DNA of 64,000 nt from Auanema rhodensis. Its lineage: Eukaryota > Animalia > Nematoda. The stretch is taken from contig CAXKVF010000076.1 in NCBI GenBank assembly GCA_964057225.1, positions 682,001-746,000 of the forward strand, given 5' to 3'. The notes under the pieces were generated by a model. That model was not told the origin of the DNA, made no database searches, and saw only the letters and a list, made by a program, of their open reading frames with translations. How positions within the stretch are numbered: position 1 is the first letter of the stretch; each line of letters starts with the position of its first letter. The translations under genes and the position numbers were made by a program. Of the stretch, positions 6,621 through 55,400 are shown piece after piece.

Positions 6621-8028
6621 ATCAATAAAAATTTGTTTTTAGACTAATATGGACATGGGGAATCTAATTTTGAAAACCGCATCTCTTTATCTTTCACGTG
6701 AAGCGAGTTACATACCAAGTGCACATCACGTGTACATTTAATTAGCATAAATTAAAGTTCACGTAAATTTCAAAGTCATGGTTACCATGAAGCAATATCA
6801 ATAAAAATTTGTTTTTAGACTAATATGGACATGGGGAATCTAATTTTGAAAACCGGATCTCTTTATCTTTCACGTGAAGCGAGTTACATACCAAGTGCAC
6901 ATCACGTGTACATTTAATTAGCATAAATTAAAGTTCACGTAAATTTCAAAGTCATGGTTACCATGAACCAATATCAATAAAAATTTGTTTTTAGACTAAT
7001 ATGGACATGGGGAATCTAATTTTGAAAACCGCATCTCTTTATCTTTCACGTGAAGCGAGTTACATACCAAGTGCACATCACGTGTACATTTAATTAGCAT
7101 AAATTAAAGTTCACGTAAATTTCAAAGTCATGGTTACCATGAACCAATATCAATAAAAATTTGTTTTTAGACTAATATGGACATGGGGAATCTAATTTTG
7201 AAAACCGCATCTCTTTATCTTTCACGTGAAGCGAGTTACATACCAAGTGCACATCACGTGTACATTTAATTAGCATAAATTAAAGTTCACGTAAATTTCA
7301 AAGTCATGGTTACCATGAAGCAATATCAATAAAAATTTGTTTTTAGACTAATATGGACATGGGGAATCTAATTTTGAAAACCGCATCTCTTTATCTTTCA
7401 CGTGAAGCGAGTTACATACCAAGTGCACATCACGTGTACATTTAATTAGCATAAATTAAAGTTCACGTAAATTTCAAAGTCATGGTTACCATGAACCAAT
7501 ATCAATAAAAATTTGTTTTTAGACTAATATGGACATGGGGAATCTAATTTTGAAAACCGCATCTCTTTATCTTTCACGTGAAGCGAGTTACATACCAAGT
7601 GCACATCACGTGTACATTTAATTAGCATAAATTAAAGTTCACGTAAATTTCAAAGTCATGGTTACCATGAACCAATATCAATAAAAATTTGTTTTTAGAC
7701 TAATATGGACATGGGGAATCTAATTTTGAAAACCGCATCTCTTTATCTTTCACGTGAAGCGAGTTACATACCAAGTGCACATCACGTGTACATTTAATTA
7801 GCATAAATTAAAGTTCACGTAAATTTCAAAGTCATGGTTACCATGAACCAATATCAATAAAAATTTGTTTTTAGACTAATATGGACATGGGGAATCTAAT
7901 TTTGAAAACCGCATCTCTTTATCTTTCACGTGAAGCGAGTTACATACCAAGTGCACATCACGTGTACATTTAATTAGCATAAATTAAAGTTCACGTAAAT
8001 TTCAAAGTCATGGTTACCATGAAGCAAT

Positions 8029-11000
8029 ATCAATAAAAATTTGTTTTTAGACTAATATGGACATGGGGAATCTAATTTTGAAAACCGCATCTCTTTATCT
8101 TTCACGTGAAGCGAGTTACATACCAAGTGCACATCACGTGTACATTTAATTAGCATAAATTAAAGTTCACGTAAATTTCAAAGTCATGGTTACCATGAAC
8201 CAATATCAATAAAAATTTGTTTTTAGACTAATATGGACATGGGGAATCTAATTTTGAAAACCGCATCTCTTTATCTTTCACGTGAAGCGAGTTACATACC
8301 AAGTGCACATCACGTGTACATTTAATTAGCATAAATTAAAGTTCACGTAAATTTCAAAGTCATGGTTACCATGAACCAATATCAATAAAAATTTGTTTTT
8401 AGACTAATATGGACATGGGGAATCTAATTTTGAAAACCGCATCTCTTTATCTTTCACGTGAAGCGAGTTACATACCAAGTGCACATCACGTGTACATTTA
8501 ATTAGCATAAATTAAAGTTCACGTAAATTTCAAAGTCATGGTTACCATGAACCAATATCAATAAAAATTTGTTTTTAGACTAATATGGACATGGGGAATC
8601 TAATTTTGAAAACCGCATCTCTTTATCTTTCACGTGAAGCGAGTTACATACCAAGTGCACACCACGTGTACATTTAATTAGCATAAATTAAAGTTCACGT
8701 AAATTTCAAAGTCATGGTTACCATGAACCAATATCAATAAAAATTTGTTTTTAGACTAATATGGACATGGGGAATCTAATTTTGAAAACCGCATCTCTTT
8801 ATCTTTCACGTGAAGCGAGTTACATACCAAGTGCACATCACGTGTACATTTAATTAGCATAAATTAAAGTTCACGTAAATTTCAAAGTCATGGTTACTAT
8901 GAAGCAATATCAATAAAAATTTGTTTTTAGACTAATATGGACATGGGGAATCTAATTTTGAAAACCGCATCTCTTTATCTTTCACGTGAAGCGAGTTACA
9001 TACCAAGTGCACATCACGTGTACATTTAATTAGCATAAATTAAAGTTCACGTAAATTTCAAAGTCATGGTTACCATGCACCAATATCAATAAAAATTTGT
9101 TTTTAGACTAATATGGACATGGGGAATCTAATTTTGAAAACCGCATCTCTTTATCTTTCAAGTGAAGCGAGTTACATACCAAGTGCACATCACGTGTACA
9201 TTTAATTAGCATAAATTTAAGTTCACGTAAATTTCAAAGTCATGGTTACCATGCACCAATATCAATAAAAATTTGTTTTTAGACTAATATGGACATGGGG
9301 GATCTAATTTTGAAAACCGCATCTCTTTATCTTTCACGTGAAGCGAGTTACATACCAAGTGCACATCACGTGTACATTTAATTAGCATAAATTAAAGTTC
9401 ACGTAAATTTCAAAGTCATGGTTACCATGAACCAATATCAATAAAAATTTGTTTTTAGACTAATATGGACATGGGGAATCTAATTTTGAAAACCGCATCT
9501 CTTTATCTTTCACGTGAAGCGAGTTACATACCAAGTGCACATCACGTGTACATTTAATTAGCATAAATTAAAGTTCACGTAAACTTCAAAGTCATGGTTA
9601 CCATGAAGCAATATCAATAAAAATTTGTTTTTAGACTAATATGGACATGGGGAATCTAATTTTGAAAACCGGATCTCTTTATCTTTCACGGGAAGCGAGT
9701 TACATACCAAGTGCACATCACGTGTACATTTAATTAGCATAAATTAAAGTTCACGTAAATTTCAAAGTCATGGTTACCATGAACCAATATCAATAAAAAT
9801 TTGTTTTTAGACTAATATGGACATGGGGAATCTAATTTTGAAAACCGCATCTCTTTATCTTTCACGTGAAGCGAGTTACATACCAAGTGCACATCACGTG
9901 TACATTTAATTAGCATAAATTAAAGTTCACGTAAATTTCAAAGTCATGGTTACCATGAAGCAATATCAATAAAAATTTGTTTTTAGACTAATATGGACAT
10001 GGGGAATCTAATTTTGAAAACCGCATCTCTTTATCTTTCACGTGAAGCGAGTTACATACCAAGTGCACATCACGTGTACATTTAATTAGCATAAATTAAA
10101 GTTCACGTAAATTTCAAAGTCATGGTTACCATGAACCAATATCAATAAAAATTTGTTTTTAGACTAATATGGACATGGGGAATCTAATTTTGAAAACCGC
10201 ATCTCTTTATCTTTCACGTGAAGCGAGTTACATACCAAGTGCACATCACGTGTACATTTAATTAGCATAAATTAAAGTTCACGTAAATTTCAAAGTCATG
10301 GTTACCATGAACCAATATCAATAAAAATTTGTTTTTAGACTAATATGGACATGGGGAATCTAATTTTGAAAACCGCATCTCTTTATCTTTCACGTGAAGC
10401 GAGTTACATACCAAGTGCACATCACGTGTACATTTAATTAGCATAAATTAAAGTTCACGTAAATTTCAAAGTCATGGTTACCATGAACCAATATCAATAA
10501 AAATTTGTTTTTAGACTAATATGGACATGGGGAATCTAATTTTGAAAACCGCATCTCTTTATCTTTCACGTGAAGCGAGTTACATACCAAGTGCACACCA
10601 CGTGTACATTTAATTAGCATAAATTAAAGTTCACGTAAATTTCAAAGTCATGGTTACCATGAACCAATATCAATAAAAATTTGTTTTTAGACTAATATGG
10701 ACATGGGGAATCTAATTTTGAAAACCGCATCTCTTTATCTTTCACGTGAAGCGAGTTACATACCAAGTGCACATCACGTGTACATTTAATTAGCATAAAT
10801 TAAAGTTCACGTAAATTTCAAAGTCATGGTTACTATGAAGCAATATCAATAAAAATTTGTTTTTAGACTAATATGGACATGGGGAATCTAATTTTGAAAA
10901 CCGCATCTCTTTATCTTTCACGTGAAGCGAGTTACATACCAAGTGCACATCACGTGTACATTTAATTAGCATAAATTAAAGTTCACGTAAATTTCAAAGT

Positions 11001-14000
11001 CATGGTTACCATGCACCAATATCAATAAAAATTTGTTTTTAGACTAATATGGACATGGGGAATCTAATTTTGAAAACCGCATCTCTTTATCTTTCACGTG
11101 AAGCGAGTTACATACCAAGTGCACATCACGTGTACATTTAATTAGCATAAATTTAAGTTCACGTAAATTTCAAAGTCATGGTTACCATGCACCAATATCA
11201 ATAAAAATTTGTTTTTAGACTAATATGGACATGGGGGATCTAATTTTGAAAACCGCATCTCTTTATCTTTCACGTGAAGCGAGTTACATACCAAGTGCAC
11301 ATCACGTGTACATTTAATTAGCATAAATTAAAGTTCACGTAAATTTCAAAGTCATGGTTACCATGAACCAATATCAATAAAAATTTGTTTTTAGACTAAT
11401 ATGGACATGGGGAATCTAATTTTGAAAACCGCATCTCTTTATCTTTCACGTGAAGCGAGTTACATACCAAGTGCACATCACGTGTACATTTAATTAGCAT
11501 AAATTAAAGTTCACGTAAACTTCAAAGTCATGGTTACCATGAAGCAATATCAATAAAAATTTGTTTTTAGACTAATATGGACATGGGGAATCTAATTTTG
11601 AAAACCGGATCTCTTTATCTTTCACGGGAAGCGAGTTACATACCAAGTGCACATCACGTGTACATTTAATTAGCATAAATTAAAGTTCACGTAAATTTCA
11701 AAGTCATGGTTACCATGAACCAATATCAATAAAAATTTGTTTTTAGACTAATATGGACATGGGGAATCTAATTTTGAAAACCGCATCTCTTTATCTTTCA
11801 CGTGAAGCGAGTTACATACCAAGTGCACATCACGTGTACATTTAATTAGCATAAATTAAAGTTCACGTAAATTTCAAAGTCATGGTTACCATGAACCAAT
11901 ATCAATAAAAATTTGTTTTTAGACTAATATGGACATGGGGAATCTAATTTTGAAAACCGCATCTCTTTATCTTTCACGTGAAGCGAGTTACATACCAAGT
12001 GCACATCACGTGTACATTTAATTAGCATAAATTAAAGTTCACGTAAATTTCAAAGTCATGGTTACCATGAAGCAATATCAATAAAAATTTGTTTTTAGAC
12101 TAATGTGGACATGGGGAATCTAATTTTGAAAACCGCATCTCTTTATCTTTCACGTGAAGCGAGTTACATACCAAGTGCACATCACGTGTACATTTAATTA
12201 GCATAAATTAAAGTTCACGTAAATTTCAAAGTCATGGTTACCATGAACCAATATCAATAAAAATTTGTTTTTAGACTAATATGGACATGGGGAATCTAAT
12301 TTTGAAAACCGCATCTCTTTATCTTTCACGTGAAGCGAGTTACATACCAAGTGCACATCACGTGTACATTTAATTAGCATAAATTAAAGTTCACGTAAAC
12401 TTCAAAGTCATGGTTACCATGAAGCAATATCAATAAAAATTTGTTTTTAGACTAATATGGACATGGGGAATCTAATTTTGAAAACCGGATCTCTTTATCT
12501 TTCACGGGAAGCGAGTTACATACCAAGTGCACATCACGTGTACATTTAATTAGCATAAATTAAAGTTCACGTAAATTTCAAAGTCATGGTTACCATGAAC
12601 CAATATCAATAAAAATTTGTTTTTAGACTAATATGGACATGGGGAATCTAATTTTGAAAACCGCATCTCTTTATCTTTCACGTGAAGCGAGTTACATACC
12701 AAGTGCACATCACGTGTACATTTAATTAGCATAAATTAAAGTTCACGTAAATTTCAAAGTCATGGTTACCATGAACCAATATCAATAAAAATTTGTTTTT
12801 AGACTAATATGGACATGGGGAATCTAATTTTGAAAACCGCATCTCTTTATCTTTCACGTGAAGCGAGTTACATACCAAGTGCACATCACGTGTACATTTA
12901 ATTAGCATAAATTAAAGTTCACGTAAATTTCAAAGTCATGGTTACCATGAAGCAATATCAATAAAAATTTGTTTTTAGACTAATATGGACATGGGGAATC
13001 TAATTTTGAAAACCGCATCTCTTTATCTTTCACGTGAAGCGAGTTACATACCAAGTGCACATCACGTGTACATTTAATTAGCATAAATTAAAGTTCACGT
13101 AAATTTCAAAGTCATGGTTACCATGAACCAATATCAATAAAAATTTGTTTTTAGACTAATATGGACATGGGGAATCTAATTTTGAAAACCGCATCTCTTT
13201 ATCTTTCACGTGAAGCGAGTTACATACCAAGTGCACATCACGTGTACATTTAATTAGCATAAATTAAAGTTCACGTAAATTTCAAAGTCATGGTTACCAT
13301 GAACCAATATCAATAAAAATTTGTTCTTAGACTAATATGGACATGGGGAATCTAATTTTGAAAACCGCATCTCTTTATCTTTCACGTGAAGCGAGTTACA
13401 TACCAAGTGCACATCACGTGTACATTTAATTAGCATAAATTAAAGTTCACGTAAATTTCAAAGTCATGGTTACCATGAACCAATATCAATAAAAATTTGT
13501 TTTTAGACTAATATGGACATGGGGAATCTAATTTTGAAAACCGCATCTCTTTATCTTTCACGTGAAGCGAGTTACATACCAAGTGCACATCACGTGTACA
13601 TTTAATTAGCATAAATTAAAGTTCACGTAAATTTCAAAGTCATGGTTACCATGAACCAATATCAATAAAAATTTGTTTTTAGACTAATATGGACATGGGG
13701 AATCTAATTTTGAAAACCGCATCTCTTTATCTTTCACGTGAAGCGAGTTACATACCAAGTGCACATCACGTGTACATTTAATTAGCATAAATTAAAGTTC
13801 ACGTAAATTTCAAAGTCATGGTTACCATGAAGCAATATCAATAAAAATTTGTTTTTAGACTAATATGGACATGGGGAATCTAATTTTGAAAACCGCATCT
13901 CTTTATCTTTCACGTGAAGCGAGTTACATACCAAGTGCACATCACGTGTACATTTAATTAGCATAAATTAAAGTTCACGTAAATTTCAAAGTCATGGTTA

Positions 14001-15600: not shown

Positions 15601-18600
15601 ATAAAAATTTGTTTTTAGACTAATATGGACATGGGGAATCTAATTTTGAAAACCGCATCTCTTTATCTTTCACGTGAAGCGAGTTACATACCAAGTGCAC
15701 ATCACGTGTACATTTAATTAGCATAAATTAAAGTTCACGTAAAATTCAAAGTCATGGTTACCATGCACCAATATCAATAAAAATTTGTTTTTAGACTAAT
15801 ATGGACATGGGGAATCTAATTTTGAAAACCGCATCTCTTTATCTTTCACGTGAAGCGAGTTACATACCAAGTGCACATCACGTGTACATTTAATTAGCAT
15901 AAATTACAGTTCACGTAAATTTCAAAGTCATGGTTACCATGCACCAATATCAATAAAAATTTGTTTTTAGACTAATATGGACATGGGGAATCTAATTTTG
16001 AAAACCGCATCTCTTTATCTTTCACGTGAAGCGAGTTACATACCAAGTGCACATCACGTGTACATTTAATTAGCATAAATTAAAGTTCACGTAAATTTCA
16101 AAGTCATGGTTACCATGAACCAATATCAATAAAAATTTGTTTTTAGACTAATATGGACATGGGGAATCTAATTTTGAAAACCGCATCTCTTTATCTTTCA
16201 CGTGAAGCGAGTTACATACCAAGTGCACATCACGTGTACATTTAATTAGCATAAATTAAAGTTCACGTAAACTTCAAAGTCATGGTTACCATGAAGCAAT
16301 ATCAATAAAAATTTGTTTTTAGACTAATATGGACATGGGGAATCTAATTTTGAAAACCGCATCTCTTTATCTTTCACGTGAAGCGAGTTACATACCAAGT
16401 GCACATCACGTGTACATTTAATTAGCATAAATTAAAGTTCACGTAAATTTCAAAGTCATGGTTACCATGAACCAATATCAATAAAAATTTGTTTTTAGAC
16501 TAATATGGACATGGGGAATCTAATTTTGAAAACCGCATCTCTTTATCTTTCACGTGAAGCGAGTTACATACCAAGTGCACATCACGTGTACATTTAATTA
16601 GCATAAATTAAAGTTCACGTAAACTTCAAAGTCATGGTTACCATGAAGCAATATCAATAAAAATTTGTTTTTAGACTAATATGGACATGGGGAATCTAAT
16701 TTTGAAAACCGCATCTCTTTATCTTTCACGTGAAGCGAGTTACATACCAAGTGCACATCACGTGTACATTTAATTAGCATAAATTAAAGTTCACGTAAAT
16801 TTCAAAGTCATGGTTACCATGAACCAATATCAATAAAAATTTGTTTTTAGACTAATATGGACATGGGGAATCTAATTTTGAAAACCGCATCTCTTTATCT
16901 TTCACGTGAAGCGAGTTACATACCAAGTGCACATCACGTGTACATTTAATTAGCATAAATTAAAGTTCACGTAAATTTCAAAGTCATGGTTACCATGAAC
17001 CAATATCAATAAAAATTTGTTTTTAGACTAATATGGACATGGGGAATCTAATTTTGAAAACCGCATCTCTTTATCTTTCACGTGAAGCGAGTTACATACC
17101 AAGTGCACATCACGTGTACATTTAATTAGCATAAATTAAAGTTCACGTAAACTTCAAAGTCATGGTTACCATGAAGCAATATCAATAAAAATTTGTTTTT
17201 AGACTAATATGGACATGGGGAATCTAATTTTGAAAACCGCATCTCTTTATCTTTCACGTGAAGCGAGTTACATACCAAGTGCACATCACGTGTACATTTA
17301 ATTAGCATAAATTAAAGTTCACGTAAATTTCAAAGTCATGGTTACCATGAACCAATATCAATAAAAATTTGTTTTTAGACTAATATGGACATGGGGAATC
17401 TAATTTTGAAAACCGCATCTCTTTATCTTTCACGTGAAGCGAGTTACATACCAAGTGCACATCACGTGTACATTTAATTAGCATAAATTAAAGTTCACGT
17501 AAATTTCAAAGTCATGGTTACCATGAACCAATATCAATAAAAACTTGTTTTTAGACTAATATGGACATGGGGAATCTAATTTTGAAAACCGCATCTCTTT
17601 ATCTTTCACGTGAAGCGAGTTACATACCAAGTGCACATCACGTGCACATTTAATTAGCATAAATTAAAGTTCACGTAAATTTCAAAGTCATGGTTACCAT
17701 GAAGCAATATCAATAAAAATTTGTTTTTAAACTAATATGGACATGGGGAATCTAATTTTGAAAACCGCATCTCTTTATCTTTCACGTGAAGCGAGTTACA
17801 TACCAAGTGCACATCACGTGTACATTTAATTAGCATAAATTAAAGTTCACGTAAATTTCAAAGTCATGGTTACCATGAACCAATATCAATAAAAATTTGT
17901 TTTTAGACTAATATGGACATGGGGAATCTAATTTTGAGAACCGCATTTCTTTATCTTTCACGTGAAGCGAGTTACATACCAAGTGCACATCACGTGTACA
18001 TTTAATTAGCATAAATTAAAGTTCACGTAAATTTCAAAGTCATGGTTACCATGAACCAATATCAATAAAAATTTGTTTTTAGACTAATATGGACATGGGG
18101 AATCTAATTTTGAAAACCGCATCTCTTTATCTTTCACGTGAAGCGAGTTACATACCAAGTGCACATCACGTGTACATTTAATTAGCATAAATTAAAGTTC
18201 ACGTAAATTTCAAAGTCATGGTTACCATGAACCAATATCAATAAAAATTTGTTTTTAGACTAATATGGACATGGGGAATCTAATTTTGAAAACCGCATCT
18301 CTTTATCTTTCACGTGAAGCGAGTTACATACCAAGTGCACATCACGTGTACATTTAATTAGCATAAATTAAAGTTCACGTAAAATTCAAAGTCATGGTTA
18401 CCATGCACCAATATCAATAAAAATTTGTTTTTAGACTAATATGGACATGGGGAATCTAATTTTGAAAACCGCATCTCTTTATCTTTCACGTGAAGCGAGT
18501 TACATACCAAGTGCACATCACGTGTACATTTAATTAGCATAAATTACAGTTCACGTAAATTTCAAAGTCATGGTTACCATGCACCAATATCAATAAAAAT

Positions 18601-20160
18601 TTGTTTTTAGACTAATATGGACATGGGGAATCTAATTTTCAAAACCGCATCTCTTTATCTTTCACGTGAAGCGAGTTACATACCAAGTGCACATCACGTG
18701 TACATTTAATTAGCATAAATTAAAGTTCACGTAAATTTCAAAGTCATGGTTACCATGAACCAATATCAATAAAAATTTGTTTTTAGACTAATATGGACAT
18801 GGGGAATCTAATTTTGAAAACCGCATCTCTTTATCTTTCACGTGAAGCGAGTTACATACCAAGTGCACATCACGTGTACATTTAATTAGCATAAATTAAA
18901 GTTCACGTAAACTTCAAAGTCATGGTTACCATGAAGCAATATCAATAAAAATTTGTTTTTAGACTAATATGGACATGGGGAATCTAATTTTGAAAACCGC
19001 ATCTCTTTATCTTTCACGTGAAGCGAGTTACATACCAAGTGCACATCACGTGTACATTTAATTAGCATAAATTAAAGTTCACGTAAATTTCAAAGTCATG
19101 GTTACCATGAACCAATATCAATAAAAATTTGTTTTTAGACTAATATGGACATGGGGAATCTAATTTTGAAAACCGCATCTCTTTATCTTTCACGTGAAGC
19201 GAGTTACATACCAAGTGCACATCACGTGTACATTTAATTAGCATAAATTAAAGTTCACGTAAACTTCAAAGTCATGGTTACCATGAAGCAATATCAATAA
19301 AAATTTGTTTTTAGACTAATATGGACATGGGGAATCTAATTTTGAAAACCGCATCTCTTTATCTTTCACGTGAAGCGAGTTACATACCAAGTGCACATCA
19401 CGTGTACATTTAATTAGCATAAATTAAAGTTCACGTAAATTTCAAAGTCATGGTTACCATGAACCAATATCAATAAAAATTTGTTTTTAGACTAATATGG
19501 ACATGGGGAATCTAATTTTGAAAACCGCATCTCTTTATCTTTCACGTGAAGCGAGTTACATACCAAGTGCACATCACGTGTACATTTAATTAGCATAAAT
19601 TAAAGTTCACGTAAATTTCAAAGTCATGGTTACCATGAACCAATATCAATAAAAATTTGTTTTTAGACTAATATGGACATGGGGAATCTAATTTTGAAAA
19701 CCGCATCTCTTTATCTTTCACGTGAAGCGAGTTACATACCAAGTGCACATCACGTGTACATTTAATTAGCATAAATTAAAGTTCACGTAAACTTCAAAGT
19801 CATGGTTACCATGAAGCAATATCAATAAAAATTTGTTTTTAGACTAATATGGACATGGGGAATCTAATTTTGAAAACCGCATCTCTTTATCTTTCACGTG
19901 AAGCGAGTTACATACCAAGTGCACATCACGTGTACATTTAATTAGCATAAATTAAAGTTCACGTAAATTTCAAAGTCATGGTTACCATGAACCAATATCA
20001 ATAAAAATTTGTTTTTAGACTAATATGGACATGGGGAATCTAATTTTGAAAACCGCATCTCTTTATCTTTCACGTGAAGCGAGTTACATACCAAGTGCAC
20101 ATCACGTGTACATTTAATTAGCATAAATTAAAGTTCACGTAAATTTCAAAGTCATGGTTA
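15421..20160 (+). repeat. 15-mer duplication (period 2640 bp)
   Basis: AAAATTC variant at 15744/18384 and TTACAG at 15907/18547, with the same downstream AAACTTC pattern. Boundaries approximate. Confidence 0.85.
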
Positions 20161-31900: not shown

Positions 31901-32390
31901 CACGTGTACATTTAATTAGCATAAATTAAAGTTCACGTAAATTTCAAAGTCATGGTTACCATGCACCAATATCAATAAAAATTTGTTTTTAGACTAATAT
32001 GGACATGGGAAATCTAATTTTGAAAACCGCATCTCTTTATCTTTCACGTGAAGCGAGTTACATACCAAGTGCACATCACGTGTACATTTAATTAGCATAA
32101 ATTAAAGTTCACGTAAATTTCAAAGTCATGGTTACCATGAACCAATATCAATAAAAATTTGTTTTTAGACTAATATGGACATGGGGAATCTAATTTTGAA
32201 AACCGCATCTCTTTATCTTTCACGTGAAGCGAGTTACATACCGGGTGCACATCACGTGTACATTTAATTAGCATAAATTAAAGTTCACGTAAATTTCAAA
32301 GTCATGGTTACCATGAACCAATATCAATAAAAATTTGTTTTTAGACTAATATGGACATGGGGAATCTAATTTTGAAAACCGCATCTCTTT
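22990..32390 (+). repeat. 24-mer duplication (4227 bp); the first copy is expanded to a 29-mer by an internal 5-mer duplication
   Basis: 3-bp insertion GAGTAGTTAC at ~23251 and ~28358 (5107 = 29x176+3). CCGGGTG at 28016/32243 (4227 = 24x176+3). GAGCTAC at 25015, 25895, 30122. Confidence 0.88.
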
Positions 32391-32402
32391 TTTTTTTGAT
32401 AT
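32391..32402. other. Inversion (strand-switch) junction with 12-nt insertion TTTTTTTGATAT
   Basis: The forward arm stops at monomer position 68 (GCATCTCTTT, 32390) and the reverse arm starts at monomer position 5 (TTGAT, 32403). The insert creates a T10 run (32388-32397) and a tandem TTGATAT-TTGATAT (32396-32409). Confidence 0.95.
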
Positions 32403-40490: not shown

Positions 40491-43400
40491 AATTTTTATT
40501 GATATTGCTTCATGGTAACCATGACTTTGAAGTTTACGTGAACTTTAATTTATGCTAATTAAATGTACACGTGATGTGCACTTGGTATGTAACTCGCTTC
40601 ACGTGAAAGATGAAGAGATGCGGTTTTCAAAATTAGATTCCCCATGTCCATATTAGTCTAAAAACAAATTTTTATTGATATTGGTTCATGGTAACCATGA
40701 CTTTGAAATTTACGTGAACTTTAATTTATGCTAATTAAATGTACACGTGATGTGCACTTGGTATGTAACTCGCTTCACGTGAAAGATAAAGAGATGCGGT
40801 TTTCAAAATTAGATTCCCCATGTCCATATTAGTCTAAAAACAAATTTTTATTGATATTGGTGCATGGTAACCATGACTTTGAAATTTACGTGAACTTTAA
40901 TTTATGCTAATTAAATGTACACGTGATGTGCACTTGGTATGTAACTCGCTTCACGTGAAAGATAAAGAAATGCGGTTTTCAAAATTAGATTCCCCATGTC
41001 CATATTAGTCTAAAAACAAATTTTTATTGATATTGGTTCATGGTAACCATGACTTTGAAATTTACGTGAACTTTAATTTATGCTAATTAAATGTACACGT
41101 GATGTGCACTTGGTATGTAACTTGCTTCACGTGAAAGATAAAGAGATGCGGTTTTCAAAATTAGATTCCCCATGTCCATATTAGTCTAAAAACAAATTTT
41201 TATTGATATTGGTGCATGGTAACCATGATTTTGAAATTTACGTGAACTTTAATTTATGCTAATTAAATGTACACGTGATGTGCACTTGGTATGTAACTCG
41301 CTTCACGTGAAAGATAAAGAAATGCGGTTTTCAAAATTAGATTCCCCATGTCCATATTAGTCTAAAAACAAATTTTTATTGATATTGGTTCATGGTAACC
41401 ATGACTTTGAAATTTACGTGAACTTTAATTTATGCTAATTAAATGTACACGTGATGTGCACTTGGTATGTAACTCGCTTCACGTGAAAGATAAAGAGATG
41501 CGGTTTTCAAAATTAGATTCCCCATGTCCATATTAGTCTAAAAACAAATTTTTATTGATATTGCTTCATGGTAACCATGACTTTGAAATTTACGTGAACT
41601 TTAATTTATGCTAATTAAATGTACACGTGATGTGCACTTGGTATGTAACTCGCTTCACGTGAAAGATAAAGAGATGCGGTTTTCAAAATTAGATTCCCCA
41701 TGTCCATATTAGTCTAAAAACAAATTTTTATTGATATTGCTTCATGGTAACCATGACTTTGAAATTTACGTGAACTTTAATTTATGCTAATTAAATGTAC
41801 ACGTGATGTGCACTTGGTATGTAACTCGCTTCACGTGAAAGATAAAGAGATGCGGTTTTCAAAATTAGATTCCCCATGTCCATATTAGTCTAAAAACAAA
41901 TTTTTATTGATATTGGTTCATGGTAACCATGACTTTGAAATTTACGTGAACTTTAATTTATGCTAATTAAATGTACACGTGATGTGCACTTGGTATGTAA
42001 CTCGCTTCACGTGAAAGATAAAGAGATGCGGTTTTCAAAATTAGATTCCCCATGTCCATATTAGTCTAAAAACAAATTTTTATTGATATTGGTTCATGGT
42101 AACCATGACTTTGAAATTTACGTGAACTTTAATTTATGCTAATTAAATGTACACGTGATGTGCACTTGGTATGTAACTCGCTTCACGTGAAAGATAAAGA
42201 GATGCGGTTTTCAAAATTAGATTCCCCATGTCCATATTAGTCTAAAAACAAATTTTTATTGATATTGGTTCATGGTAACCATGACTTTGAAATTTACGTG
42301 AACTTTAATTTATGCTAATTAAATGTACACGTGATGTGCACTTGGTATGTAACTCGCTTCACGTGAAAGATAAAGAGATGCGGTTTTCAAAATTAGATTC
42401 CCCATGTCCATATTAGTCTAAAAACAAATTTTTATTGATATTGGTGCATGGTAACCATGACTTTGAAATTTACGTGAACTTTAATTTATGCTAATTAAAT
42501 GTACACGTGATGTGCACTTGGTATGTAACTCGCTTCACGTGAAAGATAAAGAGATGCGGTTTTCAAAATTAGATTCCCCATGTCCATATTAGTCTAAAAA
42601 CAAATTTTTATTGATATTGGTTCATGGTAACCATGACTTTGAAATTTACGTGAACTTTAATTTATGCTAATTAAATGTACACGTGATGTGCACTTGGTAT
42701 GTAACTCGCTTCACGTGAAAGATAAAGAGATGCGGTTTTCAAAATTAGATTCCCCATGTCCATATTAGTCTAAAAACAAATTTTTATTGATATTGCTTAA
42801 TGGTAACCATGACTTTGAAGTTTACGTGAACTTTAATTTATGCTAATTAAATGTACACGTGATGTGCACTTGGTATGTAACTCGCTTCACGTGAAAGATA
42901 AAGAGATGCGGTTTTCAAAATTAGATTCCCCATGTCCATATTAGTCTAAAAACAAATTTTTATTGATATTGGTTCATGGTAACCATGACTTTGAAATTTA
43001 CGTGAACTTTAATTTATGCTAATTAAATGTACACGTGATGTGCACTTGGTATGTAACTCGCTTCACGTGAAAGATAAAGAGATGCGGTTTTCAAAATTAG
43101 ATTCCCCATGTCCATATTAGTCTAAAAACAAATTTTTATTGATATTGGTTCATGGTAACCATGACTTTGAAATTTACGTGAACTTTAATTTATGCTAATT
43201 AAATGTACACGTGATGTGCACTTGGTATGTAACTCGCTTCACGTGAAAGATAAAGAGATGCGGTTTTCAAAATTAGATTCCCCATGTCCATATTAGTCTA
43301 AAAACAAATTTTTATTGATATTGCTTCATGGTAACCATGACTTTGAAGTTTACGTGAACTTTAATTTATGCTAATTAAATGTACACGTGATGTGCACTTG

Positions 43401-46400
43401 GTATGTAACTCGCTTCACGTGAAAGATAAAGAGATGCGGTTTTCAAAATTAGATTCCCCATGTCCATATTAGTCTAAAAACAAATTTTTATTGATATTGG
43501 TTCATGGTAACCATGACTTTGAAATTTACGTGAACTTTAATTTATGCTAATTAAATGTACACGTGATGTGCACTTGGTATGTAACTCGCTTCACGTGAAA
43601 GATAAAGAGATGCGGTTTTCAAAATTAGATTCCCCATGTCCATATTAGTCTAAAAACAAATTTTTATTGATATTGGTTCATGGTAACCATGACTTTGAAA
43701 TTTACGTGAACTTTAATTTATGCTAATTAAATGTACACGTGATGTGCACTTGGTATGTAACTCGCTTCACGTGAAAGATAAAGAGATGCGGTTTTCAAAA
43801 TTAGATTCCCCATGTCCATATTAGTCTAAAAACAAATTTTTATTGATATTGGTTCATGGTAACCATGACTTTGAAATTTACGTGAACTTTAATTTATGCT
43901 AATTAAATGTACACGTGATGTGCACTTGGTATGTAACTCGCTTCACGTGAAAGATAAAGAGATGCGGTTTTCAAAATTAGATTCCCCATGTCCATATTAG
44001 TCTAAAAACAAATTTTTATTGATATTGGTGCATGGTAACCATGACTTTGAAATTTACGTGAACTGTAATTTATGCTAATTAAATGTACACGTGATGTGCA
44101 CTTGGTATGTAACTCGCTTCACGTGAAAGATAAAGAGATGCGGTTTTCAAAATTAGATTCCCCATGTCCATATTAGTCTAAAAACAAATTTTTATTGATA
44201 TTGGTGCATGGTAACCATGACTTTGAATTTTACGTGAACTTTAATTTATGCTAATTAAATGTACACGTGATGTGCACTTGGTATGTAACTCGCTTCACGT
44301 GAAAGATAAAGAGATGCGGTTTTCAAAATTAGATTCCCCATGTCCATATTAGTCTAAAAACAAATTTTTATTGATATTGGTTCATGGTAACCATGACTTT
44401 GAAATTTACGTGAACTTTAATTTATGCTAATTAAATGTACACGTGATGTGCACTTGGTATGTAACTCGCTTCACGTGAAAGATAAAGAGATGCGGTTTTC
44501 AAAATTAGATTCCCCATGTCCATATTAGTCTAAAAACAAATTTTTATTGATATTGGTTCATGGTAACCATGACTTTGAAATTTACGTGAACTTTAATTTA
44601 TGCTAATTAAATGTACACGTGATGTGCACTTGGTATGTAACTCGCTTCACGTGAAAGATAAAGAGATGCGGTTTTCAAAATTAGATTCCCCATGTCCATA
44701 TTAGTCTAAAAACAAATTTTTATTGATATTGGTTCATGGTAACCATGACTTTGAAATTTACGTGAACTTTAATTTATGCTAATTAAATGTACACGTGATG
44801 TGCACTTGGTATGTAACTCGCTTCACGTGAAAGATAAAGAGATGCGGTTTTCAAAATTAGATTCCCCATGTCCATATTAGTCTAAGAACAAATTTTTATT
44901 GATATTGGTTCATGGTAACCATGACTTTGAAATTTACGTGAACTTTAATTTATGCTAATTAAATGTACACGTGATGTGCACTTGGTATGTAACTCGCTTC
45001 ACGTGAAAGATAAAGAGATGCGGTTTTCAAAATTAGATTCCCCATGTCCATATTAGTCTAAAAACAAATTTTTATTGATATTGGTTCATGGTAACCATGA
45101 CTTTGAAATTTACGTGAACTTTAATTTATGCTAATTAAATGTACACGTGATGTGCACTTGGTATGTAACTCGCTTCACGTGAAAGATAAAGAGATGCGGT
45201 TTTCAAAATTAGATTCCCCATGTCCATATTAGTCTAAGAACAAATTTTTATTGATATTGGTGCATGGTAACCATGACTTTGAAATTTACGTGAACTTTAA
45301 TTTATGCTAATTAAATGTACACGTGATGTGCACTTGGTATGTAACTCGCTTCACGTGAAAGATAAAGAAATGCGGTTCTCAAAATTAGATTCCCCATGTC
45401 CATATTAGTCTAAAAACAAATTTTTATTGATATTGGTTCATGGTAACCATGACTTTGAAATTTACGTGAACTTTAATTTATGCTAATTAAATGTACACGT
45501 GATGTGCACTTGGTATGTAACTCGCTTCACGTGAAAGATAAAGAGATGCGGTTTTCAAAATTAGATTCCCCATGTCCATATTAGTTTAAAAACAAATTTT
45601 TATTGATATTGCTTCATGGTAACCATGACTTTGAAATTTACGTGAACTTTAATTTATGCTAATTAAATGTGCACGTGATGTGCACTTGGTATGTAACTCG
45701 CTTCACGTGAAAGATAAAGAGATGCGGTTTTCAAAATTAGATTCCCCATGTCCATATTAGTCTAAAAACAAATTTTTATTGATATTGGTTCATGGTAACC
45801 ATGACTTTGAAATTTACGTGAACTTTAATTTATGCTAATTAAATGTACACGTGATGTGCACTTGGTATGTAACTCGCTTCACGTGAAAGATAAAGAGATG
45901 CGGTTTTCAAAATTAGATTCCCCATGTCCATATTAGTCTAAAAACAAATTTTTATTGATATTGGTTCATGGTAACCATGACTTTGAAATTTACGTGAACT
46001 TTAATTTATGCTAATTAAATGTACACGTGATGTGCACTTGGTATGTAACTCGCTTCACGTGAAAGATAAAGAGATGCGGTTTTCAAAATTAGATTCCCCA
46101 TGTCCATATTAGTCTAAAAACAAATTTTTATTGATATTGGTTCATGGTAACCATGACTTTGAAATTTACGTGAACTTTAATTTATGCTAATTAAATGTAC
46201 ACGTGATGTGCACTTGGTATGTAACTCGCTTCACGTGAAAGATAAAGAGATGCGGTTTTCAAAATTAGATTCCCCATGTCCATATTAGTCTAAAAACAAA
46301 TTTTTATTGATATTGGTTCATGGTAACCATGACTTTGAAATTTACGTGAACTTTAATTTATGCTAATTAAATGTACACGTGATGTGCACTTGGTATGTAA

Positions 46401-49400
46401 CTCGCTTCACGTGAAAGATAAAGAGATGCGGTTTTCAAAATTAGATTCCCCATGTCCATATTAGTCTAAAAACAAATTTTTATTGATATTGCTTCATTGT
46501 AACCATGACTTTGAAATTTACGTGAACTTTAATTTATGCTAATTAAATGTGCACGTGATGTGCACTTGGTATGTAACTCGCTTCACGTGAAAGATAAAGA
46601 GATGCGGTTTTCAAAATTAGATTCCCCATGTCCATATTAGTCTAAAAACAAATTTTTATTGATATTGGTTCATGGTAACCATGACTTTGAAATTTACGTG
46701 AACTTTAATTTATGCTAATTAAATGTACACTTGATGAGCACTTGGTATGTAACTCGCTTCACGTGAAAGATGAAGAGATGCGGTTTTCACAATTAGATTC
46801 CCCATGTCCATATTAGTCTAAAAACAAATTTTTATTGATATTGGTGCATGGTAACCATGACTTTGAAATTTACGTGAACTTTAATTTATGCTAATTAAAT
46901 GTACACGTGATGTGCACTTGGTATGTAACTCGCTTCACGTGAAAGATAAAGAGATGCGGTTTTCAAAATTAGATTCCTCATGTCCATATTAGTCTAAAAA
47001 CAAATTTTTATTGATATTGCTTCATGGTAACCATGACTTTGAAATTTACGTGAACTTTAATTTATGCTAATTAAATGTACACGTGATGTGCACTTGGTAT
47101 GTAACTCGCTTCACGTGAAAGATAAAGAGATGCGGTTTTCAAAATTAGATTCCCCATGTCCATATTAGTCTAAAAACAAATTTTTATTGATATTGGTGCA
47201 TGGTAACCATGACTTTGAAATTTACGTGAACTTTAATTTATGCTAATTAAATGTACACGTGATGTGCACTTGGTATGTAACTCGCTTCACGTGAAAGATA
47301 AAGAGATGCGGTTTTCAAAATTAGATTCCCCATGTCCATATTAGTCTAAAAACAAATTTTTATTGATATTGGTTCATGGTAACCATGACTTTGAAATTTA
47401 CGTGAACTTTAATTTATGCTAATTAAATGTACACGTGATGTGCACTTGGTATGTAACTCGCTTCACGTGAAAGATAAAGAGATGCGGTTTTCAAAATTAG
47501 ATTCCCCATGTCCATATTAGTCTAAAAACAAATTTTTATTGATATTGCTTCATGGTAACCATGACTTTGAAATTTACGTGAACTTTAATTTATGCTAATT
47601 AAATGTACACGTGATGTGCACTTGGTATGTAACTCGCTTCACGTGAAAGATAAAGAGATGCGGTTTTCAAAATTAGATTCCCCATGTCCATATTAGTCTA
47701 AAAACAAATTTTTATTGATATTGCTTCATGGTAACCATGACTTTGAAATTTACGTGAACTTTAATTTATGCTAATTAAATGTACACGTGATGTGCACTTG
47801 GTATGTAACTCGCTTCACGTGAAAGATAAAGAGATGCGGTTTTCAAAATTAGATTCCCCATGTCCATATTAGTCTAAAAACAAATTTTTATTGATATTGG
47901 TTCATGGTAACCATGACTTTGAAATTTACGTGAACTTTAATTTATGCTAATTAAATGTACACGTGATGTGCACTTGGTATGTAACTCGCTTCACGTGAAA
48001 GATAAAGAGATGCGGTTTTCAAAATTAGATTCCCCATGTCCATATTAGTCTAAAAACAAATTTTTATTGATATTGGTTCATGGTAACCATGACTTTGAAA
48101 TTTACGTGAACTTTAATTTATGCTAATTAAATGTACACGTGATGTGCACTTGGTATGTAACTCGCTTCACGTGAAAGATAAAGAGATGCGGTTTTCAAAA
48201 TTAGATTCCCCATGTCCATATTAGTCTAAAAACAAATTTTTATTGATATTGGTTCATGGTAACCATGACTTTGAAATTTACGTGAACTTTAATTTATGCT
48301 AATTAAATGTACACGTGATGTGCACTTGGTATGTAACTCGCTTCACGTGAAAGATAAAGAGATGCGGTTTTCAAAATTAGATTCCCCATGTCCATATTAG
48401 TCTAAAAACAAATTTTTATTGATATTGCTTCATGGTAACCATGACTTTGAAATTTACGTGAACTTTAATTTATGCTAATTAAATGTACACGTGATGTGCA
48501 CTTGGTATGTAACTCGCTTCACGTGAAAGATAAAGAGATGCGGTTTTCAAAATTAGATTCCCCATGTCCATATTAGTCTAAAAACAAATTTTTATTGATA
48601 TTGGTTCATGGTAACCATGACTTTGAAATTTACGTGAACTTTAATTTATGCTAATTAAATGTACACGTGATGTGCACTTGGTATGTAACTCGCTTCACGT
48701 GAAAGATAAAGAGATGCGGTTTTCAAAATTAGATTCCCCATGTCCATATTAGTCTAAAAACAAATTTTTATTGATATTGGTTCATGGTAACCATGACTTT
48801 GAAATTTACGTGAACTTTAATTTATGCTAATTAAATGTACACGTGATGTGCACTTGGTATGTAACTCGCTTCCCGTGAAAGATAAAGAGATCCGGTTTTC
48901 AAAATTAGATTCCCCATGTCCATATTAGTCTAAAAACAAATTTTTATTGATATTGCTTCATGGTAACCATGACTTTGAAGTTTACGTGAACTTTAATTTA
49001 TGCTAATTAAATGTACACGTGATGTGCACTTGGTATGTAACTCGCTTCACGTGAAAGATAAAGAGATGCGGTTTTCAAAATTAGATTCCCCATGTCCATA
49101 TTAGTCTAAAAACAAATTTTTATTGATATTGGTTCATGGTAACCATGACTTTGAAATTTACGTGAACTTTAATTTATGCTAATTAAATGTACACGTGATG
49201 TGCACTTGGTATGTAACTCGCTTCACGTGAAAGATAAAGAGATGCGGTTTTCAAAATTAGATTCCCCATGTCCATATTAGTCTAAAAACAAATTTTTATT
49301 GATATTGCTTCATGGTAACCATGACTTTGAAATTTACGTGAACTTTAATTTATGCTAATTAAATGTACACGTGATGTGCACTTGGTATGTAACTCGCTTC

Positions 49401-52400
49401 ACGTGAAAGATAAAGAGATGCGGTTTTCAAAATTAGATTCCCCATGTCCATATTAGTCTAAAAACAAATTTTTATTGATATTGGTTCATGGTAACCATGA
49501 CTTTGAAATTTACGTGAACTTTAATTTATGCTAATTAAATGTACACGTGATGTGCACTTGGTATGTAACTCGCTTCACGTGAAAGATAAAGAGATGCGGT
49601 TTTCAAAATTAGATTCCCCATGTCCATATTAGTCTAAAAACAAATTTTTATTGATATTGGTTCATGGTAACCATGACTTTGAAATTTACGTGAACTTTAA
49701 TTTATGCTAATTAAATGTACACGTGATGTGCACTTGGTATGTAACTCGCTTCCCGTGAAAGATAAAGAGATCCGGTTTTCAAAATTAGATTCCCCATGTC
49801 CATATTAGTCTAAAAACAAATTTTTATTGATATTGCTTCATGGTAACCATGACTTTGAAGTTTACGTGAACTTTAATTTATGCTAATTAAATGTACACGT
49901 GATGTGCACTTGGTATGTAACTCGCTTCACGTGAAAGATAAAGAGATGCGGTTTTCAAAATTAGATTCCCCATGTCCATATTAGTCTAAAAACAAATTTT
50001 TATTGATATTGGTTCATGGTAACCATGACTTTGAAATTTACGTGAACTTTAATTTATGCTAATTAAATGTACACGTGATGTGCACTTGGTATGTAACTCG
50101 CTTCACGTGAAAGATAAAGAGATGCGGTTTTCAAAATTAGATCCCCCATGTCCATATTAGTCTAAAAACAAATTTTTATTGATATTGGTGCATGGTAACC
50201 ATGACTTTGAAATTTACGTGAACTTAAATTTATGCTAATTAAATGTACACGTGATGTGCACTTGGTATGTAACTCGCTTCACGTGAAAGATAAAGAGATG
50301 CGGTTTTCAAAATTAGATTCCCCATGTCCATATTAGTCTAAAAACAAATTTTTATTGATATTGGTGCATGGTAACCATGACTTTGAAATTTACGTGAACT
50401 TTAATTTATGCTAATTAAATGTACACGTGATGTGCACTTGGTATGTAACTCGCTTCACGTGAAAGATAAAGAGATGCGGTTTTCAAAATTAGATTCCCCA
50501 TGTCCATATTAGTCTAAAAACAAATTTTTATTGATATTGCTTCATAGTAACCATGACTTTGAAATTTACGTGAACTTTAATTTATGCTAATTAAATGTAC
50601 ACGTGATGTGCACTTGGTATGTAACTCGCTTCACGTGAAAGATAAAGAGATGCGGTTTTCAAAATTAGATTCCCCATGTCCATATTAGTCTAAAAACAAA
50701 TTTTTATTGATATTGGTTCATGGTAACCATGACTTTGAAATTTACGTGAACTTTAATTTATGCTAATTAAATGTACACGTGGTGTGCACTTGGTATGTAA
50801 CTCGCTTCACGTGAAAGATAAAGAGATGCGGTTTTCAAAATTAGATTCCCCATGTCCATATTAGTCTAAAAACAAATTTTTATTGATATTGGTTCATGGT
50901 AACCATGACTTTGAAATTTACGTGAACTTTAATTTATGCTAATTAAATGTACACGTGATGTGCACTTGGTATGTAACTCGCTTCACGTGAAAGATAAAGA
51001 GATGCGGTTTTCAAAATTAGATTCCCCATGTCCATATTAGTCTAAAAACAAATTTTTATTGATATTGGTTCATGGTAACCATGACTTTGAAATTTACGTG
51101 AACTTTAATTTATGCTAATTAAATGTACACGTGATGTGCACTTGGTATGTAACTCGCTTCACGTGAAAGATAAAGAGATGCGGTTTTCAAAATTAGATTC
51201 CCCATGTCCATATTAGTCTAAAAACAAATTTTTATTGATATTGGTTCATGGTAACCATGACTTTGAAATTTACGTGAACTTTAATTTATGCTAATTAAAT
51301 GTACACGTGATGTGCACTTGGTATGTAACTCGCTTCACGTGAAAGATAAAGAGATGCGGTTTCCAAAATTAGATTCCCCATGTCCATATTAGTCTAAAAA
51401 CAAATTTTTATTGATATTGCTTCATGGTAACCATGACTTTGAAATTTACGTGAACTTTAATTTATGCTAATTAAATGTACACGTGATGTGCACTTGGTAT
51501 GTAACTCGCTTCACGTGAAAGATAAAGAGATGCGGTTTTCAAAATTAGATTCCCCATGTCCATATTAGTCTAAAAACAAATTTTTATTGATATTGGTTCA
51601 TGGTAACCATGACTTTGAAATTTACGTGAACTTTAATTTATGCTAATTAAATGTACACGTGATGTGCACTTGGTATGTAACTCGCTTCCCGTGAAAGATA
51701 AAGAGATCCGGTTTTCAAAATTAGATTCCCCATGTCCATATTAGTCTAAAAACAAATTTTTATTGATATTGCTTCATGGTAACCATGACTTTGAAGTTTA
51801 CGTGAACTTTAATTTATGCTAATTAAATGTACACGTGATGTGCACTTGGTATGTAACTCGCTTCACGTGAAAGATAAAGAGATGCGGTTTTCAAAATTAG
51901 ATTCCCCATGTCCATATTAGTCTAAAAACAAATTTTTATTGATATTGGTTCATGGTAACCATGACTTTGAAATTTACGTGAACTTTAATTTATGCTAATT
52001 AAATGTACACGTGATGTGCACTTGGTATGTAACTCGCTTCACGTGAAAGATAAAGAGATGCGGTTTTCAAAATTAGATCCCCCATGTCCATATTAGTCTA
52101 AAAACAAATTTTTATTGATATTGGTGCATGGTAACCATGACTTTGAAATTTACGTGAACTTAAATTTATGCTAATTAAATGTACACGTGATGTGCACTTG
52201 GTATGTAACTCGCTTCACGTGAAAGATAAAGAGATGCGGTTTTCAAAATTAGATTCCCCATGTCCATATTAGTCTAAAAACAAATTTTTATTGATATTGG
52301 TGCATGGTAACCATGACTTTGAAATTTACGTGAACTTTAATTTATGCTAATTAAATGTACACGTGATGTGCACTTGGTATGTAACTCGCTTCACGTGAAA

Positions 52401-55400
52401 GATAAAGAGATGCGGTTTTCAAAATTAGATTCCCCATGTCCATATTAGTCTAAAAACAAATTTTTATTGATATTGCTTCATAGTAACCATGACTTTGAAA
52501 TTTACGTGAACTTTAATTTATGCTAATTAAATGTACACGTGATGTGCACTTGGTATGTAACTCGCTTCACGTGAAAGATAAAGAGATGCGGTTTTCAAAA
52601 TTAGATTCCCCATGTCCATATTAGTCTAAAAACAAATTTTTATTGATATTGGTTCATGGTAACCATGACTTTGAAATTTACGTGAACTTTAATTTATGCT
52701 AATTAAATGTACACGTGGTGTGCACTTGGTATGTAACTCGCTTCACGTGAAAGATAAAGAGATGCGGTTTTCAAAATTAGATTCCCCAGGTCCATATTAG
52801 TCTAAAAACAAATTTTTATTGATATTGGTTCATGGTAACCATGACTTTGAAATTTACGTGAACTTTAATTTATGCTAATTAAATGTACACGTGATGTGCA
52901 CTTGGTATGTAACTCGCTTCACGTGAAAGATAAAGAGATGCGGTTTTCAAAATTAGATTCCCCATGTCCATATTAGTCTAAAAACAAATTTTTATTGATA
53001 TTGGTTCATGGTAACCATGACTTTGAAATTTACGTGAACTTTAATTTATGCTAATTAAATGTACACGTGATGTGCACTTGGTATGTAACTCGCTTCACGT
53101 GAAAGATAAAGAGATGTGGTTTTCAAAATTAGATTCCCCATGTCCATATTAGTCTAAAAACAAATTTTTATTGATATTGGTTCATGGTAACCATGACTTT
53201 GAAATTTACGTGAACTTTAATTTATGCTAATTAAATGTACACGTGATGTGCACTTGGTATGTAACTCGCTTCACGTGAAAGATAAAGAGATGCGGTTTTC
53301 AAAATTAGATTCCCCATGTCCATATTAGTCTAAAAACAAATTTTTATTGATATTGGTTCATGGTAACCATGACTTTGAAATTTACGTGAACTTTAATTTA
53401 TGCTAATTAAATGTACACGTGATGTGCACTTGGTATGTAACTCGCTTCACGTGAAAGAAAAAGAGATGCGGTTTTCAAAATTAGATTCCCCATGTCCATA
53501 TTAGTCTGAAAACAAATTTTTATTGATATTGCTTCATGGTAACCATGACTTTGAAATTTACGTGAACTTTAATTTATGCTAATTAAATGTACACGTGATG
53601 TGCACTTGGTATGTAGCTCGCTTCACGTGAAAGATAAAGAGATGCGGTTTTCAAAATTAGATTCCCCATGTCCATATTAGTCTAAAAACAAATTTTTATT
53701 GATATTGGTTCATGGTAACCATGACTTTGAAATTTACGTGAACTTTAATTTATGCTAATTAAATGTACACGTGATGTGCACTTGGTATGTAACTCGCTTC
53801 ACGTGAAAGATAAAGAGATGCGGTTTTCAAAATTAGATTCCCCATGTCCATATTAGTCTAAAAACAAATTTTTATTGATATTGGTTCATGGTAACCATGA
53901 CTTTGAAATTTACGTGAACTTTAATTTATGCTAATTAAATGTACACGTGATGTGCACTTGGTATGTAACTCGCTTCACGTGAAAGATAAAAAGATGCGGT
54001 TTTCAAAATTAGATTCCCCATGTCCATATTAGTCTAAGAACAAATTTTTATTGATATTGGTGCATGGTAACCATGACTTTGAAATTTACGTGAACTTTAA
54101 TTTATGCTAATTAAATGTACACGTGATGTGCACTTGGTATGTAACTCGCTTCACGTGAAAGATAAAGAAATGCGGTTCTCAAAATTAGATTCCCCATGTC
54201 CATATTAGTCTAAAAACAAATTTTTATTGATATTGGTTCATGGTAACCATGACTTTGAAATTTACGTGAACTTTAATTTATGCTAATTAAATGTAAACGT
54301 GATGTGCACTTGGTATGTAACTCGCTTCACGTGAAAGATAAAGAGATGCGGTTTTCAAAATTAGATTCCCCATGTCCATATTAGTCTAAAAACAAATTTT
54401 TATTGATATTGGTTCATGGTAACCATGACTTTGAAATTTACGTGAACTTTAATTTATGCTAATTAAATGTACACGTGATGTGCACTTGGTATGTAACTCG
54501 CTTCACGTGAAAGATAAAGAGATGCGGTTTTCAAAATTAGATTCCCCATGTCCATATTAGTCTAAAAACAAATTTTTATTGATATTGGTTCATGGTAACC
54601 ATGACTTTGAAATTTACGTGAACTTTAATTTATGCTAATTAAATGTACACGTGATGTGCACTTGGTATGTAACTCGCTTCACGTGAAAGATAAAGAGATG
54701 CGGTTTTCAAAATTAGATTCCCCATGTCCATATTAGTCTAAAAACAAATTTTTATTGATATTGGTGCATGGTAACCATGACTTTGAAATTTACGTGAACT
54801 TCAATTTATGTTAATTAAATGTACACGTGATGTGCACTTGGTATGTAACTCGCTTCACGTGAAAGATAAAGAGATGCGGTTTTCAAAATTAGATTCCCCA
54901 TGTCCATATTAGTCTAAAAACAAATTTTTATTGATATTGGTTCATGGTAACCATGACTTTGAAATTTACGTGAACTTTAATTTATGCTAATTAAATGTAC
55001 ACGTGATGTGCACTTGGTATGTAACTCGCTACACTTGAAAGATAAAGAGATGCGGTTTTCAAAATTAGATTCCCCATGTCCATATTAGTCTAAAAACAAA
55101 TTTTTATTGATATTGGTTCATGGTAACCATGACTTTGAAATTTACGTGAACTTTAATTTATGCTAATTAAATGTACACGTGATGTGCACTTGGTATGTAA
55201 CTCGCTTCACGTGAAAGATAAAGAGATGCGGTTTTCAAAATTAGATTCCCCATGTCCACATTAGTCTAAAAACAAATTTTTATTGATATTGGTTCATGGT
55301 AACCATGACTTTGAAATTTACGTGAACTTTAATTTATGCTAATTAAATGTACACGTGATGTGCACTTGGTATGTAACTCGCTTCACGTGAAAGATAAAGA

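Follow-up and report, generated by a model that had tools for sequence, protein, structure and literature searches.

In this study, a 64,000-nucleotide stretch of DNA from the nematode Auanema rhodensis (assembly GCA_964057225.1, contig CAXKVF010000076.1, positions 682,001 to 746,000 of the forward strand) was analysed; this whole stretch is called the window, and all coordinates below are counted from its first letter. The 64-kb window was found to be a single AT-rich satellite with a monomer of 176 bp and a GC content of 32%, in which the strand switches once. Outward from this switch, rare variants of the monomer follow the same order on both sides. The mirror order is real and far beyond chance, and descent of both arms from one segment is strongly supported. 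The arms probably arose by a fold-back or template-switch inverted duplication inside a plus-oriented array of the 176-bp satellite, followed by unequal exchange. The features that carry the argument are as follows.

1-32390, plus strand: left satellite array, 184 monomers including four 115-bp and two 179-bp variants (anchor spacing, monomer table).
32403-64000, minus strand: right satellite array, 179 full monomers, all of 176 bp (tandem repeat calls, skew flip, monomer table).
8185-31623, plus strand: left arm of the mirror, about 23.4 kb, including a private 4.2-kb tandem duplication (variant-string alignment, block identities).
32403-53195, minus strand: right arm of the mirror, about 20.8 kb, beginning at monomer position 25 (alignment, MAFFT).
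30015-31422 (plus) and 32604-34011 (minus): gapless mirror block 1, coordinate sum 64026, 4 mismatches in 1408 bp, compared with 12 in the next-best register.
18217-22616 (plus) and 39996-44395 (minus): gapless mirror block 2, coordinate sum 62612, 7 mismatches in 4400 bp, compared with 40 in the next-best register.
8185-13288 (plus) and 48092-53195 (minus): gapless mirror block 3, coordinate sum 61380, 5 mismatches in 5104 bp, compared with 35 in the next-best register.
31624-32390, plus strand: 767-nt spacer without a mirror partner, continuing the left arm; the sum 64026 pairs 32403 with 31623.
32391-32402, no strand assigned: junction filler of 12 nt, TTTTTTTGATAT, partly templated.

Tandem Repeats Finder called the satellite on the plus strand from 1443 to 32390 and on the minus strand from 32403 to 64000, and the signs of both GC skew and AT skew flip in the 32-34 kb bin; by these two measures there is only one strand switch in 64 kb. 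The two subarrays, 32.4 kb in plus orientation and 31.6 kb in minus orientation, are made of the same 176-bp monomer. Random pairs of a left and a right monomer are 98.8% identical, which is the background for the comparison of the arms.

For this comparison, both arms were split into monomers, every difference from the 176-bp consensus was called, and the monomers were listed outward from the junction. Pairing of unique k-mers (k = 24) gave one mirror pair only, because most variants recur; strings of monomer variants were used in its place and aligned locally, with shared variants weighted by rarity. Written as monomer position and base, the outward order equal on both arms runs 39A; 168C; two plain monomers; 16G,52A,53C; 16G,40C,89T; 108C; 14C,38C,85T; and 74G,83T, and at its distal end the shared order runs 16G,80G,99G; 168C; 14C,61G; 14C,154T; 10T,16G; and 126C. 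The alignment in mirror order scored 101.1, compared with 10.7 ± 1.45 (maximum 15.1) in 30 shuffles of the right arm and 12.7 in non-mirror order. On the alignment path lay 91 monomer pairs with 22 differences in 16,016 bp, giving 99.86% identity; 71 of the pairs were identical, and 56 had at least one non-consensus base in common. When 10297-13288 was aligned by MAFFT with the reverse complement of 48092-51083, 2991 of 2992 positions matched and no gaps were introduced. The inverted arms are thus copies of one segment, as expected of a fold-back, on the strength of the mirror score and the identity.

A preliminary description of the window, made from the letters alone, had proposed this common descent and had recommended encoding the monomers by their variants and aligning the left arm to the reverse complement of the right. 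The alignment, once run, recovered the mirror order with shuffles far lower, and the proposal is strongly supported. The 12 pairs of variant coordinates that the preliminary description listed all share the same non-consensus base in reverse-complement context. Its constant coordinate sums (64026, 62612, and 61380) coincide with the three gapless blocks, but they are net values only, with at least 16 whole-monomer indel runs between the blocks. The shift of 1414 between the first two sums had been written as 8 × 176 + 6, and the 6 is explained by two 179-bp monomers (at 23145 and 28252) that lie between the first and second groups of pairs.

The picture of a giant mirror-image palindrome centred on the strand switch was borne out in part. 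Mirror order extends over about 21-23 kb per arm, but the arms have diverged, and the outer limits of the mirror are about 8185 (left) and about 53195 (right), where the right array restarts the pattern. The strand switch is not the mirror centre, as the symmetry axis of the inner block is at 32013, which is 383 bp to the left of the switch at 32391-32402. The arms are unequal in length (23.4 vs 20.8 kb), and 16 whole-monomer indel runs, amounting to 41 monomers, separate the blocks. Together with a left-private duplication of 24 monomers, these gap runs differ from the collinear, near-identical arms of a palindrome maintained by conversion. Divergence is 0.28% near the junction and 0.10% distally, so that identity does not rise toward the centre. 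The left-private duplication lies next to the junction:

22969-32390, plus strand: left-arm tandem duplication, with copies at 22969-28075 and 28076-32302 and the first 88 bp of a third period.

Its copies are 0-2 mismatches apart, and its period is 24-29 monomers. The duplication stops no more than 88 bp from the strand switch, and its third period breaks off at monomer position 88, the point at which the inverted arm is attached. This end at the junction points either to two events at one fragile site or to one replication event with multiple switches. On the other arm, the monomer at 46684-46859 is the most diverged of the window, with five private substitutions (14C, 70G, 88C, 123T, and 129A) in near-consensus surroundings, and it has no left-arm partner.

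At the junction, the left array tracks the consensus to monomer position 88 (32390), and the right array, as its reverse complement, from position 25 (32403). Since the join is out of monomer phase (88 vs 25), it represents a non-homologous scar rather than a product of monomer exchange. Within the filler and its flank, TTGATAT duplicates, in direct orientation, the right-arm bases next to it (32403-32409). Apart from a T10 run at 32388, no A/T run in the window reaches a length of 8, and each of the 24-mers across the junction (32378-32421) is unique in the window. To judge from the letters, pairing would be possible between the left end, ...CTCTTT, and the A-run of monomer positions 27-31, the expected starting point of the copy of the upstream monomer in the right arm. 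The overlap of T- and A-runs and the 12-nt filler correspond to the inverted microhomology or small insertion that a fold-back leaves where the spacer meets the inversion. Apart from this join, the 176-bp consensus (e.g. 32127-32302) contains a 13-bp near-palindrome, CATGGTTACCATG, two CACGTG cores, and a CACGTA variant. The junction uses none of these elements; only A/T runs are used.

The spacer is unpaired, contiguous with the left arm and in the same orientation as this presumed template arm, as a fold-back would leave it, although later monomer indels could have altered its length. The monomers that mark it, 117G,118G and 14C,60A, are missing from the whole right array of the window. By itself, the phase offset guarantees a loop of 63 nt as a minimum. 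A proximal segment with the order 39A, 168C, two plain monomers, and 16G,52A,53C brings the mirror to within 4.35 monomers of the junction. This proximal segment lies outside the tandem macro-unit of the right array and is absent where the right arm meets a third copy of the pattern, which is described below.

The fold-back or template-switch duplication is favoured because the two arms come from one segment, a short spacer is contiguous with one of them, and the junction carries microhomology and an insertion. In the proposed course of events, a break or collapsed replication fork would have left a 3′ end at monomer position 88 (32390). By folding back or by a switch of template, this end may have come to prime synthesis some 0.77 kb upstream, in the A-run of monomer positions 27-31, and copying outward in reverse complement would then have produced the right arm. 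Slippage in the T-run and a local duplication of 7 nt could account for the untidy join and its 12-nt filler. Only the resulting structure is observed; that there was a break and a priming step, and in which direction copying ran, is what we infer from it. The product is a macro-dyad, an imperfect palindrome of about 45 kb that is in principle able to form hairpins or cruciforms, and the inverted duplication would have roughly doubled this stretch of the array. Since then, unequal exchange has added and removed whole monomers many times on the two arms, and point changes have set them apart by about 0.14%. Later changes include the 4.2-kb left duplication that abuts the junction and, on the right, a tandem repeat of the pattern of about 20 kb. 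A divergence of 0.14% makes the event young, though not new, and the local direct duplications, at 0-0.1%, are younger.

The pattern shared by the arms is present three times in the window, once in the left array (plus strand) and twice in the right array, proximally and distally (both minus strand). The third copy and the array beyond the left end of the mirror are:

53196-63931, minus strand: third copy of the macro-pattern (Rd), in tandem with the right arm at a period of about 112 monomers and running off the window.
157-10472, plus strand: two 5158-bp macro-units (157-5314 and 5315-10472) with 2 mismatches between them, each with two 115-bp truncated monomers.

The third copy mirrors 19097-25435 of the left array, with 5 mismatches in 5104 aligned bp. 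Pairwise divergence is 0.10% between the left and distal copies, 0.20% between the left and proximal copies, and 0.27% between the proximal and distal copies (5, 10, and 12 differences; no outgroup).

Several observations weigh against the fold-back. The indel runs between the blocks, the absence of the left arm's 4.2-kb duplication from the right arm, and the resulting lack of a clean palindrome are contrary to its simple picture. At its outer end the mirror lacks a non-homologous scar, and the first full right monomer (124G) mismatches its predicted partner (168C). Because whole-monomer indels are frequent, 4 of the 4.35 monomers of the spacer could be a later indel. Among the short Logan contigs listed, none spans the join. 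The third copy is in direct orientation to the right arm, so that macro-copies which an inversion could use do exist, and the left and right arms do not come out as the closest pair among the three copies, although counts of 5, 10, and 12 are too few to order the splits. The preliminary description had named fold-back among its mechanisms and had held that recurrence of the variant order in many macro-repeat copies would let a simple inversion explain the mirror. The anatomy of a 767-nt spacer, a T/A-run overlap, and a 12-nt filler agrees with the former; as to the latter, one further copy, at 53196-63931, was found, and it keeps the inversion alive. In such a balanced, in-phase inversion, an array with direct macro-copies of about 20 kb would have been broken twice at nearly the same phase, and the mirror would have formed without duplication. 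The pattern does occur twice in tandem in the right array (at 32403-53195 and from 53196 to the window's end), nested direct duplications occur on both arms, the three copies are about equally diverged, and, with only one breakpoint inside the window, a second could lie outside it. Nevertheless, the two breakpoints would need to agree in phase to within 767 bp in a 20-kb pattern, and when pairs of breakpoints were drawn at random in these arrays, only 1.9-3.9% had a mirror block as good as the observed one within 5 monomers of both ends. The proximal segment shared by both sides of the junction is not part of the tandem unit of the right array, and the left array is not periodic for the pattern, 157-8184 being made of the different 5158-bp unit. 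Moreover, we infer that no homology-driven mechanism favours an in-phase inversion of direct repeats. An inversion is therefore considered unlikely, albeit the strongest of the competing explanations.

Adapter loss and template-complement fold-back reads give near-perfect palindromes with zero spacer, and a fold-back artefact at the level of the read was rejected on the spacer, the filler, and the diverged arms. An assembly artefact of another kind, in which two copies or haplotypes of the array were joined head-to-head through a chimeric read, would be compatible with the lack of a spanning read, and allelic arrays too would differ by whole-monomer indels and about 0.1% substitutions. It is improbable in view of the asymmetric spacer of 767 nt, the filler with its unique T10, the 16 indel runs, and the unequal arms; in addition, the left tandem duplication halts at the junction and the right array has a private macro-duplication of its own. 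About equally improbable is that the junction is a conserved, multi-copy inversion site in an old amplified palindromic unit, of which this locus is one amplified copy and not the site of the event. Word depth in Logan contigs gives a hint in this direction, and no more than a hint: it is high in the bins at 32342-32409 in four runs from at least two organisms, with the neighbouring left bin empty. However, these contigs are multi-placed and their evidence is uninterpretable for this purpose; among the contigs listed (60-84 nt), none bridges the junction, and depth around 32308-32341 is zero in all four runs. Large palindromes elsewhere, for example on sex chromosomes, are kept alike by conversion, and inverted arrays can pair, so that gene conversion from arm to arm in a snap-back register might have made the mirror secondarily between unrelated inverted arrays. 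This has very little probability, and a mirror made by conversion was rejected on the register shifts and indels: mirror order persists through three registers and 16 indel runs, which is not expected of in-register conversion, identity shows no gradient toward the centre (0.28% near the junction vs 0.10% distally), and any 176-bp register would pair equally well at 98.8%. A precedent for the amplified unit is found in the beetles Tribolium madens and T. freemani, in which thousands of arrays share a few conserved types of inversion site, according to the available text of the report (PMC13081366).

Further observations concern the private structure of the arrays. Two 179-bp monomers, each with a 3-bp insertion, are located at 23145-23323 and 28252-28430 and were copied by the left tandem duplication. 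Their homologue in the third copy (55308-55483) is 176 bp long; the insertion is therefore confined to the left arm and postdates the separation of the three copies. The 115-bp monomers, in which positions 116-176 are deleted, start at 157, 1328, 5315, and 6486, with spacings of 1171 and 3987 bp, and the higher-order structure that contains them is private to the distal left array. The part of this 5158-bp-unit array at 157-8184 lies outside the outer mirror end and has no counterpart on the right side in the window. In the distal right array, at 56012-61819, a block of 10-11 monomers is present in three tandem copies, and the left arm and the proximal right arm have one copy each. The order in this block is 16G; 88C,168C; 16G,83T; 88C,168C; 14C; 83T; 14C,105A; 83T,175A; 16G,154G; and 16G.

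A literature search with substrings of the monomer gave no match to the satellite, a metagenome scan for the monomer gave 0 hits, and an Rfam scan at the junction found no family. A fungus-gnat satellite that turned up under "176-bp satellite" was rejected as a relative, its sequence being unrelated; papers on the centromeres of Brassica and rice came up alongside it. Sampled words of the satellite were present in 15 sequencing runs, labelled as six or more coded organisms (A-F), in shares between 0.23 and 0.95, and the satellite family is therefore common to several related taxa.

In structures of the duplication, inverted triplication, duplication type (DUP-TRP/INV-DUP) and in other replication-based rearrangements, by fork stalling and template switching (FoSTeS) or microhomology-mediated break-induced replication (MMBIR), microhomology or a templated insertion marks the join of an inverted copy, and a direct duplication adjoins the inverted junction. 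The 4.2-kb tandem duplication is placed likewise beside the inverted junction of the window. Such structures need a second, tail-to-tail junction nearby, whereas none is present within the 31.6 kb to the right. Ampliconic palindromes of sex chromosomes have inverted arms of tens of kb, a short spacer, and collinear identity above 99.9% through arm-to-arm conversion. The locus described here has arms of that size, a short spacer, and high identity, but it differs in its whole-monomer indels and unequal arms, with no sign of ongoing in-register conversion.

A close parallel at the level of the junction is with human constitutional inverted duplications. In all 21 sequenced junctions a spacer of 766 bp to 70 kb was present, with 2-8 bp of inverted microhomology in 13 and insertions in 5 of the 21 (Hermetz et al. 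2014, PMC3907307). Like these, the present locus has inverted arms from one segment, a spacer (767 nt) joined to the non-inverted arm, and microhomology with an insertion (PMC3907307). It is unlike them in lying within a homogeneous tandem array, where only rare monomer variants reveal the event, and in having arms remodelled by unequal exchange (PMC3907307). The terminal deletion, the telomere or translocation end, and the gain in copy number of human inverted duplications are not visible in the window, in which the minus orientation runs on to the last base.

At the level of the array, the locus resembles the macro-dyads of Tribolium, in which, as far as the available text goes, one satellite forms two opposite subarrays of several to tens of kb with unequal arms (PMC13081366; 10.1101/2024.12.02.626372). 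The same division of one satellite into opposite multi-kb subarrays is found here. The Tribolium macro-dyads are described there with a short inversion segment of truncated monomers, to which the present junction may be likened. In the same portions of text, the inversion sites of Tribolium are conserved genome-wide and major and minor satellites are intermingled, while here the 176-bp satellite is unrelated and the junction is unique in the window. Neither mirror order at the level of variants nor the origin of macro-dyads is reported in the available text of those accounts; here the mirror order is shown directly. Changes of satellite orientation in humans are likewise described, in the available part of one report, for beta-satellite, HSat3, and the active higher-order repeat array of CEN01 (10.64898/2026.07.22.740206). 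As here, the orientation changes within a continuous array, and that part of the report sees such changes as by-products of expansion or as inversions. They are common and are catalogued there by orientation; arm-to-arm symmetry of variants, as found in the present window, is not shown in that part.

Strand switches in satellites and centromeres are now seen in many complete assemblies, and their origin is rarely resolved since the arms look generic. Here, the order of rare variants shows that both arms of a dyad of about 45 kb come from one segment. On its own, this is a single locus with a known mechanism and known kinds of structure. If the fold-back is correct, the locus would be a concrete case of array growth by palindrome formation. 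It would also provide an internal clock, with about 0.14% substitutions on one side and, on the other, 16 or more indel events of whole monomers in roughly 20 kb, by which substitution and unequal exchange could be compared within one satellite. A wider and more tentative suggestion, which we regard as possible and still rather doubtful, is that fold-back inverted duplication is the regular route by which the satellite arrays of this genome gain strand switches and grow. With similar reserve, each macro-dyad might start out truly palindromic and keep a hotspot at its centre, where a second break or template switch would have given the 4.2-kb duplication. If fold-back is indeed this regular route, mirror order would be a datable record of array growth and would offer a mechanistic origin for the macro-dyad architecture of Tribolium.

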